Source of the DNA: Blepharisma stoltei ATCC 30299
Taxonomy: Eukaryota > Protista > Ciliophora
Length of the DNA stretch: 64,000 nt
Direction of reading: 5' to 3'
Assembly: GCA_965603825.1 (NCBI GenBank)
Contig: CBFDEM010000064.1
Location: 186,001 to 250,000 of the forward strand
Made by a program: the position numbers and the translations under genes. The notes beneath the pieces were generated by a model that searched no databases, was not told where the DNA came from, and was given only the letters and a program-made list of their open reading frames with translations. Below are positions 55,073 to 64,000 of the stretch, piece by piece (within the stretch, counting starts at the first letter, position 1; each line of letters begins with the position of its first letter).

Positions 55073-56002
55073 TTAACTTAACGGGTGTTTAAACTGAACA
55101 ATAATTGCAGTCATATTATCGCAGCCTAGCCCTGCATTCGCCCCCACACTTGGTGCAAGGCATCTATCAAGCATTTCTTCAATGATTTGCTGCAAAGGTT
55201 TAGTATTGATTCTTTCTCTAACGAAGCTCACACACTGCTGTGACGTAAGCATATCCCACACCCCATCGCATGCAAGGACCATAAATTCATCATTAGGAGT
55301 AAGGGTTTCTCTTCTAATATCTGGGTAAGCACTTATAATTTGATCTTTTGGTGGAATAGACCGATTTTGCTTATATTCTAAATCCCCGATGCATCTGCTT
55401 AGGTTTAAATTTCCCATAACTCTCCCATCTTCCACGTTCCCACCTGCTCTGTAAATTCTGTTTTTTTCTTCAGGCATGTCTGGCTTATGATCAATAGAGA
55501 GTTCTACTGCTTGTCCATTTCTGCACAGCACACATCTAGAGTCTCCTGCATTTGCTACGTATAGTTCATTCCCTTTAATTAATGCAGTCACTGCTGTACA
55601 TCCAGCTTGGATTATCATATCATTAGCATTAACTGGGGTGCTATCAGGTAAATCTTTTGAAATCCTCACAAGTTCTTTCATGCCATCTTGGGTGACTTGC
55701 AGCTCATCTAATCGCAAATAAGTCTCTTGTAGTGCAAGATCAATACGACCTTGGCGATAATTAGCATTTTGAAGCAGCTCCTGGCTCAAATGCCGAGTTA
55801 CGAATTGAGCAACTTCATGTCCACCGTGCCCATCATATACTCCAAACAGCTCAGATGAGGCATCGAAGTTAATATTTGTGATTTTCGCATCCTCCATTGT
55901 CATGCGCCAGCCTTGCATGTCAGAAGCTGCATAGCGAACGCGAGAGTTTTCAGAAATTTGGGTGCGCTTTTCTGTGCGAGGAGCAGATAAATAAGGTCCC
56001 AT
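55073..56002 (-). CDS. PP2C/PPM-family protein phosphatase
   Basis: MGPYLSAP, MQGWR.TMED, YDGHGG, NAGDSR, DHKP, LSRCIGD, LACDGVWD, GCDNMT. Confidence 0.97.
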   Translation of the reverse strand: MGPYLSAPRTEKRTQISENSRVRYAASDMQGWRMTMEDAKITNINFDASSELFGVYDGHGGHEVAQFVTRHLSQELLQNANYRQGRIDLALQETYLRLDELQVTQDGMKELVRISKDLPDSTPVNANDMIIQAGCTAVTALIKGNELYVANAGDSRCVLCRNGQAVELSIDHKPDMPEEKNRIYRAGGNVEDGRVMGNLNLSRCIGDLEYKQNRSIPPKDQIISAYPDIRRETLTPNDEFMVLACDGVWDMLTSQQCVSFVRERINTKPLQQIIEEMLDRCLAPSVGANAGLGCDNMTAIIVQFKHPLS

Positions 56003-56243: not shown

Positions 56244-58418
56244 TTACATTACGATTATTTTGTTCCTTTCAAGACCTCCTTCGATCAAAAGCCCCTTAAT
56301 GAAATCATTATATCCTGAAGGTCCACAGATCCAGGCGTTACTTGCTTTCATTCCTGCATATTTCTTAACCAAATCAGGGAAACTCATTTCTTTTGCTTGC
56401 TTATCAATCACAGGGATGAACTTGAACTTGTCTTCTCCCAAAGCTCTTGAGGTAGCCTCCAGTATATCAAAGCAGAAGGAGTCTTCCTTTGTTCTGAATG
56501 ACGCAAATAATGTAAAGCTCATAGGCAGAGGCTGGTCTTTTGTGGACCACAAAAGATAAGCAACATCCAAAAATGGAATTAATCCAGTGCCACCTGCGAA
56601 GCCTAAATAATTTCCAGAATAAGCATTAAGCATTAGGCCAGGGCCCAAAGGTCCTTTTAATTGAAGCTCGCCACTATCTCCTTGATTATGCATATGCTGA
56701 GTCATTTTCCCTTTTGCGTAAACTCTATATATAAGTTGAATGCTTCCTTTTTTGCATTCTGGGAATTTAGAAGAAAGGTTTAGCTCAGATGCCCAACTGT
56801 GTAGGTCTGCAAAAAATGCACTATAATACCTTGAAGTTAAGGTCCCACCAATTTTTGCGGTTACTTTAAAATGCTTTCCAATCCAAAACGGCTCCTTAAT
56901 GTTCTGGCTCATTTGAAAATGAGGTGAGGAAAGAGAAATTATCTTTGTGCTAGGATTTAGCTCTTGCTGGAAATTGATTTTCCAGTTCATGTGGTTATTG
57001 TCTCCAGAAGAATCTGTTGCATCTAAATATCCCTCAGGATATGGAACTCTTGCTATTGCTAACTTTTTGGTATAGTCAAGTGCAGGTCTTGAATGAGCGT
57101 ATGGGAGTAGGTCTCCGTTTGTGCTTGAGCATCCGACTAAGTACTTTCCTGCATCTTCTCCAATTGCATCTTCAAGCATAAAGCCACCTCCTGGATGTGA
57201 AGTAATAAAATGCTTCACATTCATCACCAACTCATCGTAAAACATAATTTTGGCATTTTTTTCGACGATCATATCCATAGCTTCTTTATGGGTCATAGCA
57301 GGAAGTGTTCTTCTGCATAACAAGCCAGCCCACCAATAAGAAATTTGGTGCCTAACTTCGAAAAGAGCCCATATCCCTAATACAATCCCTAATCCAGCAT
57401 GGTAAAGAGAGGCGCTTGAAAAGATATCCCAACCATATGAATTATTCAAAAGTCCTCCAATTACCATGCTATATCCAGTAACTTTATGGATTCTTCGGAT
57501 TTGAGAAATCAATCCAAAGTGAGAAGACTTAGATTGAAGAAATCCACAAATCAAGCCCATAACTCCTTGCCCAACAACTAGGAAGGTTAAGCAAAGCCCT
57601 AGTCTTGAGTGATGCCTTGGTTTGCTAGTTCCTTGGATATATGGTGTCTCATGTGCATGATAAGTCAGTGAAACACTTATAATTGTAGCTGCAACTGCGA
57701 CTCCCAGTAAAATTAGGTGACAGAAATACCAACACCTCCAGTGTTTGCAGTATCTAGCAATAGCAATGCCAATAGGTGCTAGAATCAGCCAGCAAACTGT
57801 CATAACAAGACCATGCATGCCAAATCCTTCATGGTCACTGTCCTCTGTAGAAAAACTTGCATCTTCTTTTCTTGTAGTAAATTTAATTGTTCCCTGAGAA
57901 TAGTCGCTATGTTCTTTAAACCCTGCATTTGCATTATTAGAATCTCTGAGGTAAGCCCAGTTAATCTTCATTTTTCTTCCTGGTATGATAACTGTATCCC
58001 AGATATCTCCTGTATCTAAAAGTCTTTTGAAAATGACGTTGATAAATCCTGAGCTTCCTGTTGTATTGCTAGGATAATAGTATCCGTATTGTTCGATAAT
58101 ACTATACTCGCCATTCCAATACTCAGAATCTGCCTTTGGGGTGTCATGGTTTTCAGACCATAAGTCTAGCATTGAGGCTTTAATAGTAGATGAGCCGCCT
58201 CCAACAGCTACATACATATCGCTCAGATACATTGTGTTTGATAAGCCAATGCCACACCAACTTGCTTCACACTAAATAATGCTTACGAGGAACTGGAATG
58301 TTATGTACTCCCCACTTATTTCCCAGCCTAGGGTCATATATTTGTCCAAAGCCTGATATATGAACCCGGTAATGGGACTTGAGAAAAACCATAGTAATGC
58401 TAATAGTGATTGCTTCAT
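56244..58418 (-). CDS. Signal peptide-DOMON-cytochrome b561-cytochrome b5-FNR(FAD/NAD(P)H) fusion oxidoreductase, copy 1 (719 aa)
   Basis: ATG 58418; intron 58272-58286. WCGIGLSNTM..SDM and KRLLDTGD..D..I...INWAY...EH (DOMON); four TM His; HPGG/AHS (b5); RYYS, GKMT, GPLG, AGGTGLIPF, ICGP (FNR). Confidence 0.9.
58272..58286 (-). other. 15-nt intron (DOMON fusion copy 1)
   Basis: GTAAGCATTATTTAG; in-frame TAG; same position as in copy 2. Confidence 0.92.
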
Positions 58419-60511
58419 TTATAAGAATGTAACGCGTTTTGCAAAAAAATGCTTTAACGCATGGATCACTGGTGGGATAAAATGGCAATTCTTAGTGATC
58501 TCAGGAATGAAATCTTTCCAATTATATTTTAACTTTTAATTCTCAAAGCAGAAGTAAGGTTAAATGTGACCAGAGCCAGCTTGAACTGATTTTTGTGAAA
58601 AATGAAAAATTTTGACTAATTTGAGCTAATTCAATAAGAAATGCTAAAGAAAGTCTTTTTTTGGTATAATTGATACTTTTAAGTGGTTTAGTTAATTAGT
58701 TAAAGCTAAAACAAATCATGATTGATTAAATTAGTTGATAATTAAAAATATTATTATTTTTGCATCATCTCTGGTGTTTAATTGTTTTTTAAGTCAATAT
58801 TAAAGTAAGTCTAGGTGTTTACATTACTTATCATAATAAGTAATTTATATATTATCTTCGATGGTCTCCTATTAAAGCGATTAACTTTCAAATAAATTAT
58901 ATTTTTGCTTTGAAAAGCAAGAAGAATTTTTAAAAATTAGTTAATAAAACGATATAAATATCAATTTTTACTTAAACCCTCATTAAGACTTCTTAATCTA
59001 TATGAGACCTCCTTGTAAATAATATCAAAGCTGTGTGCATTGTTCAATTCTTAAATATTTTGAAACCATTTTTTATTATGCAGTCAAAAGAAACACTCCT
59101 ATGCCTGGAACTCAAGTCTAACTATCTATTTTATAGCAATAATTATTAAAGATATCAAAGATAAATGCTTATCAATTATAATCATATTTGCAAAGATACT
59201 GCATGTTGTGTCTCTTATCATAGTGCATAAAATTATAATATAAAAAAAATTCAATAAAATAAAACATTATATAATTGATTAAACGATGGTTCGTTCAATC
59301 AAGGAAATATGATTTAAAAAGAGAGGCTCGGCAATTAATTTAATTTATACTCATCTAATTAGCACAAAAGCATTTTAATGCTGGAATAGTAAGCATTTGC
59401 TTTCCAAAGATTCATGATAACTTTATTGGATATTTTTCTAGTTCTATTCTTGAGTTTCGGTAAGTATTTTTAAGATAAGGAAAGCATACTTCTTTTTTCG
59501 ATCTCTTATATAAAAATTTAATTTGCATAAGGTAAAAAAAATATTGAGATAATAGTTTTTCATTCAGTTGCGTTTATAAAAAGATGCTATTTTTTGAGAA
59601 AGAAACCTTTGTTAATACCTTTATCCAAATTACTTATAGATATCGACTTATAAATTTTAATTGCTTTTCATAATATCTAGATTTATCTGCAAGAAAGAAA
59701 TTGGATAATAAAGCCTAAAATTCTTTCAAAATTTATAACATAGCTAAAAGTTTACATTTTCAATAGAGGATAGAATTTAACCACACAGCCTTTCAGCCAT
59801 TTATGTCTGCTTTGATCTGTAATGAACCCAGTAAACATTTATACCTTATCTATAATTTTCTCCAAAATCTACCAAATGCCAAGAGTTCTCACTTGACTCT
59901 CTCTTCTCTCCTAGTTTTATTCAGTCTAAATTGTTCTGATGTGAAGAATAACTCGATGCATAATTAAGATATTGCTGTTGCAAAAAGAAAATGTTTTAAA
60001 AGTCCAGAATAGAGCAGGTAATTATACGACGAAAATAATGGGACTCATTAAAGACAAGAGCGAACTATTTGGAAACTGTTGCTAAATTTATGATAAGATT
60101 TCATGCAAGATCTACTGATATAGATTTATTCATGCTACTTATAGGAGAAACTTGATAAGCAATCATTTCAGAGGCTAATCAGAATTCAACTTAAAGAAAT
60201 TGATGAAAGGTAGAGGACCTAATGAGCCTAATAAATATGGGGTTTTTTATTTAGGAGATGATGCAATCAATTTTACAACGAACCTAGGATTTAGCTTAGA
60301 AATTAATTATTCGATGTGTGACACTTTTAATCATTATCGGCAAAGAGTGGCCCATTAGCTTTATATGCATCATTCTGTATGTTGAAGCCTACTTTAATAA
60401 ACTTCTATTCTTTTATTATTTTTACTCGCCATTACAATAATCAATAAAATACATATTTAATCAACACATAATTACTGGACGATTTATCTAATTTTTCATT
60501 CTATATTAACA

Positions 60512-62719
60512 ATGACCAAGATATATCTTTTGATACTTTTGACCTTCTTGGCCTACGCAGAGCTGATTTACCAAAAAATCGATAGCGTTATGACAATCGG
60601 TTGGGAAATCTCAAATGACGAAATCATATTCAACTTTAAGGTAGCATTTATTTAGTGCAAAGCTGATTGGTGCAGCATAGGGTTCGCTAATTCCATGTTT
60701 GGATGTGATATGATTGTAGCCCTACAAAAAAAGTCTGCGAATTCCACTGTAGAACTGATGGACATCTGGTCAGAAAATCATGACACTCCTTACTCAGATA
60801 CTGATCTAAAAGGAACCAATGACATAAAATATATCAAAGGAGGCTATTCAACTTCACCAGGTAGACTAATTGATGTATATTTTAGCAGAAAATTGGACAC
60901 TGGAGATAAGTATGACAAGGTTATAGTGCCTGACCAAGTCATGGACATTAACTGGGCATATCAAAAAAGAACAAGACGCTTTGATGAGCATGATGAGTAC
61001 GGAGCATCAACCATTGTATTTGCAACAAAAATAGAGAAAATAAACTACCAAATTGATGAAAATGATTTCGAGTATTATGCAGCCCATGCATTGCTTATGA
61101 TAATTTCATGGTCTTTATTAGCTCCTGGAGCTATTATTGTTGCCAGGTACTATAAAAGCTGGAAACTTTGGTACCCTTGTCATCTAATTTCTTTTTCCCT
61201 GGCTATTTTTTTAACCCTATTTAGTGTTGGATTAGCTTTTTATAAACATCCAGTATCTTATGAAACCTTTACAGAAGTGCCAAGATACCACGCCAGGCTT
61301 GGATTTCTCTTAGCAGGAACTGTTGTAGCCCAAGGCATTTCTGGCTTAATCGTAAGGTGGCTTCAGACTTCTTCGACCAGCTTTTCAGCAATTTCCCAAA
61401 CAAGAAGACTTCATAAATCAATTGGATGAATTATGGCAACTCTTGGCATCCTGATCAATATATCAGGGTTTTGACTTGTGGAAAGCGAATTAGATGAGGT
61501 CAGTGGAATATTGTTCTGGACTGCAATATGCACATTGATAATAGTTTCCTTTGAAATTGATCATAAATGGATAAATCTTATTCCAGCTCAATTCGTTGTA
61601 TGGATGAAGCTAAAACTCTCCAAAAGATTCCCATTCCTTTATAAGGCAAACAGGAGCATGACTCATAGAGCAGCTCTAAAAGAGATGACAATGAAAAATA
61701 AAGATTACATGTTTTATGAAGAATTCGTGATTGATATAACTGATTTTAAGTTCTCCCATCCAGGAGGAGCATTCATGCTGAATGATTCTATCGGAGAAGA
61801 TACAGGGAAATACATGATTGGGTGCAGCAGTGCAAATGGAGAATTAGCGCCATATACCCATTCGCCTGAGTCTTTTGATCTTCTTAAAAAGCTTGTAGTT
61901 GCCAAGATTCCATATCCAGATGAGTTTTTAATACCTCTTAACTATGAAGAATTGATGGATTCCATGACTTGGAGTGTCAAATCACAGCATGTTATAAGCG
62001 AAAATACTTATTTACTTGTATTAAGTTCTAAGAACTTCAATATGAACTCGAAATGCAAAAATCCTTTATGGCTTGGCAAACATTTTAGGATTAATGCAGA
62101 AGTTGATGGGAAAAATGTATCAAGATATTATAGCGCATTCTTTTGCAACTTGAATTCATGGGCTATTGAATGCCAAGAAAGTGGTTATAGAGTTAGCACT
62201 TATCCAAACGTGAAAAGTGGTAGATTGCAGCTGATTTATAAGGAATATCCTCAAGGAGTCTTAACCCAGCATTTGAAGTCTTGCCAAGCAAAAACTAAAC
62301 TAAACCTCAAAGGTCCATTAGGACCTGGACTCTGCTTATCAGAATTTTCTGGTAAATATGTAGCCTTTGCAGCTGGTACAGGCTTGGTTCCATTTCTGGA
62401 CATAGTCTGCTATCTTTGGACTATAAGAAATAGCCCACATATTCAATTTTCTTTTACTCTTATAGTTTCTTTTAGGAATTTGAAAGACTTCTTTGGCTTA
62501 GATCTTCTTGAAGCTACTGCAAGTGCTTTAGGAGAAAGTAGATTTAAGCTTGTTATCCTCACTAATGAAAGACGAGAACAACTTCCTGGATTAGTCAAAG
62601 AATGTGGAGAGCTCAAGTCAGATCTAGCTTGGGTTTGTGGGCCTTCTGGGTACAATAAGTTTATTCTTGATTCCCTGAAGGCTGGAGGACTTAGTAGAGA
62701 TAAAATTATCGTGATGTAA
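60512..62719 (+). CDS. Signal peptide-DOMON-cytochrome b561-cytochrome b5-FNR fusion oxidoreductase, copy 2 (730 aa)
   Basis: ATG 60512; intron 60641-60655; TGA(Trp) at 61427 and 61472. Same motifs as copy 1, and both end in KIIVM. Confidence 0.9.
60641..60655 (+). other. 15-nt intron (DOMON fusion copy 2)
   Basis: GTAGCATTTATTTAG; in-frame TAG. Confidence 0.92.
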
Positions 62720-62960: not shown

Positions 62961-64000
62961 CTAACTACATTCAATTTTCGCTCGCTTCGGGGAACATTCT
63001 ACACAAAAGAATGTTTCCGGAACTTCGTACCTCTTTAATCCTATACATTCGCTGTGGAATCATTTTCCACATTCATCGCAAGCAATCATTTCACTATCCC
63101 TAATCCTTTGTTCATAATCCTCATCTGTCTCATCATTTCTCTTTGGCGTGGCTTCAACAAATGGCTTTCTGCACAAGCAATGAAGCTCTTGACTTACGAG
63201 ATCTTCAAGAACAGGCTGCTTCGGCTTCCTTCCTCTTTTGGCTCCTCCTATAGGCTTAATATACTTTTTCAGCTTAGCTTTTTCTCTTAATGTTGGCTCA
63301 TAAACTACTAAAGGCTTTCCTAAAATTTGAATTTCCTTTTTAATTACTGGGAATATTGATTCATTGTAAAATTTATAGCAATCTTGGTATTTTCTCCCTT
63401 GTAAAGCAATTTTTTCTAGCAAAATCATTTGAGGATGCAAAACTGTGTATTGCAAAGGTTTGGACACTTGCACGCCTCCTCGCAACTTTTTCTGAGAGCT
63501 TGCTTTGGTGAAGGCAAATTTAAAGCCAGGCTTTTCTTCTTTTGCAAGCCTTGCTTCAACGATTTTTAGCAGCTCTAGCTTTTCTTCGTAAGAAAATTCT
63601 CCACTTCTCTTTCGTTTAACTTGGGGTGGAGTTTGACAGGCTAGCTGATTCTTTTTGACTTTTCTAGCTTCAAATTTCTGAAGAGCCCTTCCTAAATACA
63701 ATATATCTTCGACAGCCTTTTTCTCAAGGCTTTCAATTTGCTTTCTCAGCCTAAGTGGCCGATGTTTTGAGCAATAACAATTCATATCATCAAATCCTGT
63801 TTTATCCCTGGTGCTAAGAAAATTATTTTTAGCACATAATGGATGGAATCCCACTGTACACCTCCCATGATGACACTGTACACAGGCTCCGTTTTTTGTG
63901 TTGCATTTTTGGCATTTGAGCTGAAATCGGTCCTTGTTGATTTTCGAAATATCAATTTCTGACATCAATTCTTGATCTTGGAAGCAAGAAAAATCTAAAT
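62961..64000 (-). CDS. PHD-finger chromatin protein (extended PHD plus C-terminal PHD), 5'-truncated
   Basis: CQKC...GACVQCHHGRCTVGFHPLCA...YCSKH; HCLCRKP...MIACDECGK-W(TGA 63060)-FHSECIG...FFCVEC; ends TAG at 62961. Confidence 0.9.

Follow-up and report, generated by a model that had tools for sequence, protein, structure and literature searches.

Two divergent genes in a 64,000-nucleotide stretch of the Blepharisma stoltei ATCC 30299 genome (contig CBFDEM010000064.1, positions 186,001 to 250,000; this whole stretch is the window, and positions below are counted from its first letter) each encode a DOMON domain, a cytochrome b561, a cytochrome b5 and a b5-reductase-like module in one polypeptide. 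We propose that the two proteins, gene A and gene B, are NAD(P)H-fed, ascorbate-independent trans-membrane reductases, probably of Fe(III) or Cu(II), and give this reading a probability of roughly 0.55. The trans-membrane wire itself, from NAD(P)H through flavin adenine dinucleotide (FAD), the b5 heme and the b561 hemes to the DOMON heme, is very likely.

The design would be that of a CYBDOM-type cytochrome (DOMON plus b561) with a built-in donor, the b5 plus b5-reductase unit. We infer cofactor binding, electron flow, nucleotide, substrate and location, and the steps would run as follows. Cytosolic NAD(P)H would reduce the FAD, from which single electrons would pass to the b5 heme. The b5 domain would dock at the cytosolic face of b561, the ascorbate site of ordinary family members, and the two b hemes, first the inner and then the outer, would take the electrons across the membrane. 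The Met/His-ligated DOMON heme, outside the cell or in a vacuole lumen, would receive them and reduce an oxidised acceptor that takes one electron. Chelates of Fe(III) or Cu(II) are the likeliest such acceptor, and their reduction would serve metal uptake at the cell surface or in the food vacuole. Given its cofactor types, such a chain would descend in energy to a terminus of positive potential; metal chelates, quinones and peroxidase intermediates would fit this better than O2. The plant CYBDOMs HYP1 and CRR, the nearest tested relatives, reduce ferric and cupric substrates (PMC10784544; PMC10784552), and in another phagotroph a b561 is required for using ferric colloids (PMC11934334). For these two reasons, a ferric/cupric role is the best supported.

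Both genes are intact, transcribed and spliced as modelled. Gene A (58418-56244, reverse strand; exons 58418-58287 and 58271-56244) encodes 719 amino acids and gene B (60512-62719, forward strand; exons 60512-60640 and 60656-62719) encodes 730, each ending in TAA. As a preliminary description of this DNA had called from the letters, each gene has one 15-nucleotide intron; both are GT-AG (58272-58286, reverse; 60641-60655, forward) and interrupt the protein at the same position. In four runs of one study, separate contigs span gene A and gene B; they lack exactly these two introns, differ from the genome at no other base, and leave most intergenic DNA at zero depth. That the four runs are RNA is a guess, and the pattern observed is that of spliced mRNA; contig depth cannot rank expression of gene A against gene B. 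Since the introns are missing, no other differences are seen and the intergenic DNA is uncovered, we conclude that both genes are expressed and spliced. A gene-fusion or frame artefact is ruled out by the single spliced contig per gene in four runs and by relatives that keep the domain order, and a chance match by 57 relatives at E<=1e-62 and 324 clusters at E<=1e-30. Searches used the second exon of gene A and segments of gene B without stop codons as queries, and P0001, a Blepharisma stoltei public protein with an unnamed product, served for alignments and folding. Gene A matches P0001, which fits the genetic code and the tiny introns. The preliminary description had both genes read TGA as tryptophan; this stands for gene B (codons 301 and 316, at 61427 and 61472, the second aligning with Trp in gene A) but not for gene A, which has no internal TGA. 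The two proteins are 42% identical end to end (42-43% across comparisons).

Pfam domains occur in the same order in both genes: DOMON, Cytochrom_B561, Cyt-b5, FAD_binding_6 and NAD_binding_1, the last weakly; an NCBIfam search gave sub-threshold matches only. In gene A, on the reverse strand, a putative signal peptide (58365-58418; assigned by eye and from the model to a short hydrophobic stretch at the N-terminus) precedes the DOMON domain (57876-58361; PF03351, E 1.8e-11), whose candidate heme ligands are Met58 (58232) and His165 (57911). The five-helix cytochrome b561 (57333-57833) carries His197 and His265 for the putative outer heme and His229 and His306 for the cytosolic one. The cytochrome b5 domain (57048-57302; His403 at 57197, His437 at 57095) is followed by the b5-reductase-like FAD/NAD(P)H module (56247-57005; RYYS, GPLG, GGTG and CGP motifs, Asp667). 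The forward-strand counterparts in gene B are the DOMON (60563-61024; PF03351, E 3.7e-11; Met57 at 60695, His155 at 60989), b561 (61067-61567; PF03188, E 5e-07; His187, His219, His255, His296), b5 (61652-61906; PF00173, E 1.4e-05; His411, His445) and reductase (61949-62716; PF00970, E 1e-11). Four modules behind the N-terminus had been described for both genes, and the Pfam order, the models and the presence of every motif quoted agree with that description.

An AlphaFold model of gene A (pLDDT 88, pTM 0.75) consists of a beta-sandwich, five long helices at residues 191-357, a b5-sized domain and a ferredoxin-NADP reductase (FNR) fold. When the DOMON-b561 part was modelled alone (pLDDT 93), its best fold matches were Arabidopsis b561 (Z 14.0) and human DCYTB (Z 13.9), then the DOMON of dopamine beta-hydroxylase (Z 13.1) and cellobiose dehydrogenase (CDH)-type cytochrome domains (about 12; CDH itself, Z 11.8), and the NOX5 membrane domain scored Z 11.4 at 8% identity; Z near 13 is not decisive for helical bundles. 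Independently of the fold, a family sequence profile aligns the four b561 His one-to-one with those of 4O6Y (Arabidopsis b561, E 5.6e-08) and 5ZLE (human DCYTB, E 2.5e-06), one per helix on four different helices, in agreement with the earlier listing of them as putative ligands. The DOMON Met falls in register with the CDH cytochrome domain in the profile alignment.

The eight putative heme ligands are conserved family-wide as well as in both copies, where the preliminary description had listed them. A set of 91 diverse DOMON-b561 rows retains the DOMON Met in 83, the DOMON His in 87 and the four b561 His in 91, 91, 86 and 91; the b5 axial His are kept in 157/158 and 154/158 rows, the remainder being gaps. 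Across 52 family members, PF00173 was matched in 46, FAD_binding_6 in all 52 and NAD_binding_1 in 15. The predicted topology places DOMON outside and b5/reductase inside because a putative signal peptide is followed by five predicted helices. The loop charges agree with this: loops 1 and 3 and the stretch after TM5 are basic with almost no acidic residues, and the acidic residues lie before TM1 and on loops 2 and 4. The helix number and charge bias give the same sidedness, DOMON outside and b5/FNR inside, as the preliminary description had proposed.

The cytosolic face of b561 bears on the identity of the donor. In solved b561 structures, the cytosolic ascorbate contacts are basic residues at positions H2-7, H2-3 and H4-7 (PMC10691727). 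These positions are basic in just 13/91, 4/91 and 5/91 family rows, and the basic contact residues are absent from the proteins of both gene A and gene B. Other cytosolic positions are mostly basic (H2-12 in 79/91, H2-9 in 78/91, H4-3 in 64/91) and form a possible docking patch for the mildly acidic b5. This combination would be expected if a tethered b5 had replaced ascorbate as the donor, and the absence of the contact residues lends support to the earlier idea of a hard-wired donor. A different view is that the modules are merely tethered: the b561-DOMON part would use a small soluble reductant, and the b5/reductase part would serve cytosolic acceptors such as desaturases with the membrane part as its anchor. 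A CYBDOM-like R-Y-x-K motif after TM1 is kept, as this view would have it, and ordinary b5/b5-reductase pairs do feed enzymes of the endoplasmic reticulum. However, the fusion order and the short b561-b5 linker (median 19 amino acids) are kept across ciliates and other supergroups, the ascorbate contacts are missing, and the genome already has four separate b5 reductases. We therefore regard simple tethering as very improbable.

The C-terminal module is nearest to NADH-b5 reductases by sequence and fold. That of gene A matches yeast Cbr1 with Z 22.5 (root-mean-square deviation 2.9 over 233 residues) and the NOX5 dehydrogenase with Z 17.0. The preliminary description had named it an FNR module; the FNR motifs and fold are there, but the module resembles b5 reductase and nitrate reductase rather than plant FNR. 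Its RxY(S/T), GPxG, GxG..P and CGP motifs are invariant or nearly so in 52 rows. Gene A and 30 of the 52 rows have Asp667, which lines up with the Asp found in the genome's own b5 reductases; an acidic residue at this position would select NADH over NADPH. Because the reductase strands, including Asp667, align with those of the genome's own b5 reductases, NADH is somewhat more likely as the donor for gene A. Throughout the family the last residue of the reductase is Met or Leu (56247-56249 and 62714-62716), in contrast to the aromatic final residue of the ordinary b5 reductases in this genome, a difference that could influence how accessible the flavin is.

The taxonomic range, which the preliminary description proposed to check, extends well outside Blepharisma. 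Full-length relatives are found in Stentor coeruleus, Tetrahymena utriculariae, Paramecium sonneborni and Euplotes crassus. Ciliophora also make up most of a 54-member Atlas cluster, and the fusion order is maintained in ciliates and beyond. Database relatives with several DOMONs have up to 15 of them (P0101). In a profile search, many proteins of 1,100-2,000 amino acids carry an N-terminal An_peroxidase domain in front of the DOMON-b561-b5-reductase core. These include members from one glaucophyte, Cyanophora paradoxa (P0096, P0137), and two stramenopiles, Platysulcus tardus (P0159, P0160) and Discosporangium mesarthrocarpum (P0156), and loci of this type span L017:5001-9257, L020:8001-11858 and L022:6001-10065. 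The Atlas cluster of the peroxidase-fused type has 179 members, and many of these relatives keep the distal Gln/His, Arg and proximal His motifs. Judged from domain order, the layout is a look-alike of DUOX built from different parts. The FastTree tree, which has no outgroup, leaves gain and loss of the peroxidase undecided, and word-index searches returned almost no kin of a peroxidase-fused member and almost no stand-alone DOMON-b561 kin.

These relatives suggest a second use of the same wire, namely supplying electrons to a partner in the lumen or at the surface, which might be a peroxidase intermediate, an enzyme containing copper or heme, or a quinone such as the Blepharisma pigment. The peroxidase-fused proteins would then be trans-membrane NAD(P)H peroxidases. 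The Cyanophora, Platysulcus and Discosporangium members, many with catalytic motifs, are consistent with this, the arrays of up to 15 DOMONs would suit a long-range wire, and the CDH cytochrome domain, a fold match of the DOMON, passes electrons to a partner enzyme. However, no redox partner gene adjoins the family genes, either among the neighbours of the Blepharisma pair or at the Stentor loci, and An_peroxidase (PF03098) had no match in the Blepharisma genome, a weak negative since the control also matched nowhere. Members are present, too, in Tetrahymena, Paramecium and Euplotes, ciliates that are not known to have such pigments. A pigment-specific role as the origin of the family is thus unlikely, and the quinone-pigment role raised in the preliminary description is weakened, the family being special neither to Blepharisma nor to pigmented ciliates. 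Overall, we consider partner feeding somewhat unlikely.

The family appears to dominate the trans-membrane redox inventory of this genome. All seven Cytochrom_B561 matches genome-wide belong to it, and stand-alone b561 was not detected by a search of limited sensitivity. FAD_binding_6 matched 11 family members and the four ordinary b5 reductases. Ferric_reduct (PF01794), NAD_binding_6 (PF08030) and FAD_binding_8 (PF08022), which mark the ferric reductase domain (FRD) superfamily, had no genome match; Ferric_reduct and NAD_binding_6 matched the control prokaryotes and FAD_binding_8 matched nowhere. With every b561 match in the family and no FRD domains found, these data suggest that trans-membrane di-heme reductases of Blepharisma come mainly from this family. 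A 2013 survey likewise found FRD homologs in 0 of 18 alveolate proteomes (PMC3591440). NOX-like genes have been reported for Tetrahymena (PMC7730656; PMC10944698), so FRD absence is not ciliate-wide.

As NOX was not detected in the Blepharisma genome by the six-frame Pfam search, the family could be a NOX/DUOX analogue that makes superoxide or H2O2 from O2, either at the cell surface or inside food vacuoles, to kill prey bacteria or to signal. The peroxidase-DOMON-b561-b5-reductase relatives do mirror the DUOX layout. Energetically, the proposal fares poorly. The hemes of b561 and of Met/His DOMONs have positive potentials and those of NOX strongly negative ones, and one-electron reduction of O2 would be uphill from the former. 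The membrane domain, moreover, is b561 and not FRD. Tetrahymena food vacuoles do make reactive oxygen species (ROS), which are lowered by a NOX inhibitor (PMC10944698), but that ciliate is reported to have separate NOX-like genes (PMC7730656; PMC10944698), so that its ROS needs no other source. Taken together, an oxidase of this kind is unlikely, and direct superoxide production is now the less likely of the roles proposed earlier.

The head-to-head layout of the pair is real but looks incidental. The family has 12 copies in the genome, 11 full-length and one with three frameshifts, and other copies are arranged in tandem, in Blepharisma as in Stentor. Three copies on contig C24 share 56-58% identity with gene A, against 43% for gene B, and gene A groups with the C24 copies in the FastTree tree, whose deep nodes are unresolved. 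DNA comparison detected no similarity between the flanks of gene A and gene B, which are separated by a 2.1-kb spacer. A recent inverted duplication is therefore ruled out (42-43% between A and B against 56-58% between A and the C24 copies, together with the tree grouping and the dissimilar flanks). Because there are 12 copies and gene A is closer to those on C24, the arrangement appears to reflect an old local duplication or chance, and not a feature of the system.

The divergent intergenic region (58419-60511, 2093 bp, 27% GC) holds no long open reading frame. Short low-depth contigs from three runs lie within it at 59951-60418, upstream of gene B, and may represent either a long 5' leader or a separate non-coding transcript. 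The neighbouring genes encode an ordinary PP2C phosphatase (55076-56002, reverse strand) and a PHD-like zinc-finger protein (62964-63998, reverse strand), with no evident link to the pair. Elsewhere in the genome, one paralog has four DOMONs before the core (G000:C51:544506-548117; L010, L016). The frameshifted copy (G000:C51:554800-556965; L041) has at least two DOMONs and a core broken by three frameshifts, and is a pseudogene or an assembly error. The paralogs L007 and L009 are not pseudogenes, as their TAA stops fall within in-frame 15-nucleotide introns. At G000:C10:476344-479490 (L040), a DOMON and two cytochrome b5 matches lie on one strand and in one frame within 3 kb, and b561 or reductase was not detected among the Pfam matches at that locus.

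Several observations weigh against a single NAD(P)H-fed metal reductase. The 12 copies, the multi-DOMON forms and a well-supported clade (P0022, P0023, P0027, P0029, P0036, P0047, P0049) in which the third b561 His, an outer heme ligand, is replaced by Ser or Ala with the other ligands kept, suggest several substrates, and the fused peroxidase of some relatives points towards peroxide chemistry in part of the family. The nucleotide is uncertain because gene B has Asn at the position of Asp667 and other paralogs vary. The counts of ascorbate-contact residues depend on a register reckoned from the His through loops whose length varies, and the absence of NOX/FRE comes from a six-frame Pfam search with limited controls.

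If the ferric/cupric reading is true, the implications go beyond this locus. Eukaryotes use FRE/NOX proteins as their standard means of sending electrons from NAD(P)H through a membrane, and b561 proteins are viewed as drawing theirs from ascorbate. The two systems would be united in a b561 that carries an NAD(P)H dehydrogenase of its own. The family is a candidate for how ciliates, which are major bacterivores, reduce iron or copper from their food. Since Tetrahymena, Paramecium and Stentor all have members of the family and are routinely subjected to knock-out or RNA interference, the proposal is directly testable. We put forward only tentatively the wider claim that an uncharacterised, widespread NAD(P)H-driven trans-membrane family has reached the FRE/NOX/DUOX design independently and replaces FRD in ciliates such as Blepharisma, with the peroxidase-fused form of glaucophytes and stramenopiles as a convergent DUOX or a trans-membrane NAD(P)H peroxidase. 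In the relatives with a fused peroxidase, a DUOX-like design may have arisen independently a second time.

Among known systems, the CYBDOM proteins (Arabidopsis HYP1 and CRR, animal FRRS1/SDR2, Drosophila CG8399) have a signal peptide and an outer Met/His DOMON, as predicted for the Blepharisma proteins, and the same four-His b561; those of plants also have five trans-membrane helices (PMC10784544; PMC10784552), the number predicted here. Unlike them, the Blepharisma proteins add a predicted cytosolic b5 and FAD/NAD(P)H module, and the donor would be NAD(P)H. The conserved Arg at H4-7 of CG8399 proteins and the other ascorbate contacts are mostly absent from the Blepharisma-type family.

The FRD superfamily (FRE/FRO, NOX, DUOX) offers the same overall plan of a cytosolic FNR-fold dehydrogenase, two membrane hemes and a far-side acceptor. 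The DOMON-eFRE proteins of Naegleria, Albugo and Phytophthora have the same outer DOMON and are the closest functional parallel (PMC3591440), and DUOX, like the peroxidase-fused relatives, has an outer peroxidase-like domain. In FRD proteins, however, the His pairs lie on TM3 and TM5 (PMC3591440), whereas the Blepharisma-type membrane domain is a b561 with His on four helices. There is also an extra b5 heme between FAD and membrane, and the reductase is nearer to b5 reductase than to the NOX5 dehydrogenase, as the Z scores above indicate. Membership of FRD/NOX is ruled out by the b561 fold, by PF01794 in 0/52 members, and by the presence, beyond an intervening b5, of FAD_binding_6 and NAD_binding_1, where FRD proteins have FAD_binding_8 and NAD_binding_6 directly after the membrane domain.

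The donor unit has its own parallels. Eukaryotic nitrate reductase and CYB5R4/NCB5OR, the next-best Atlas structural neighbours, place b5 and then b5-reductase in one chain, and the C-terminal half of nitrate reductase has the same order as the Blepharisma-type unit. These enzymes are soluble and deliver electrons to the molybdenum cofactor or to cytosolic acceptors, whereas here the partner would be a membrane b561 and a DOMON. Cellobiose dehydrogenase also relays electrons from a flavin to a Met/His DOMON-type heme in one chain, but it is secreted, uses a GMC flavin domain and a sugar donor, and does not cross a membrane.

No description of a b561-b5-reductase fusion was found in the literature searched, which excluded the two reviews likeliest to picture it. 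The family's sequences and Pfam labels are already in public databases, and one paper mentions in general terms DOMON fused to FAD/NAD-binding oxidoreductases. The proteins described here therefore combine, in an apparently uncharacterised arrangement, the b561 and DOMON of a CYBDOM that lacks the ascorbate site with a donor unit like that of nitrate reductase.

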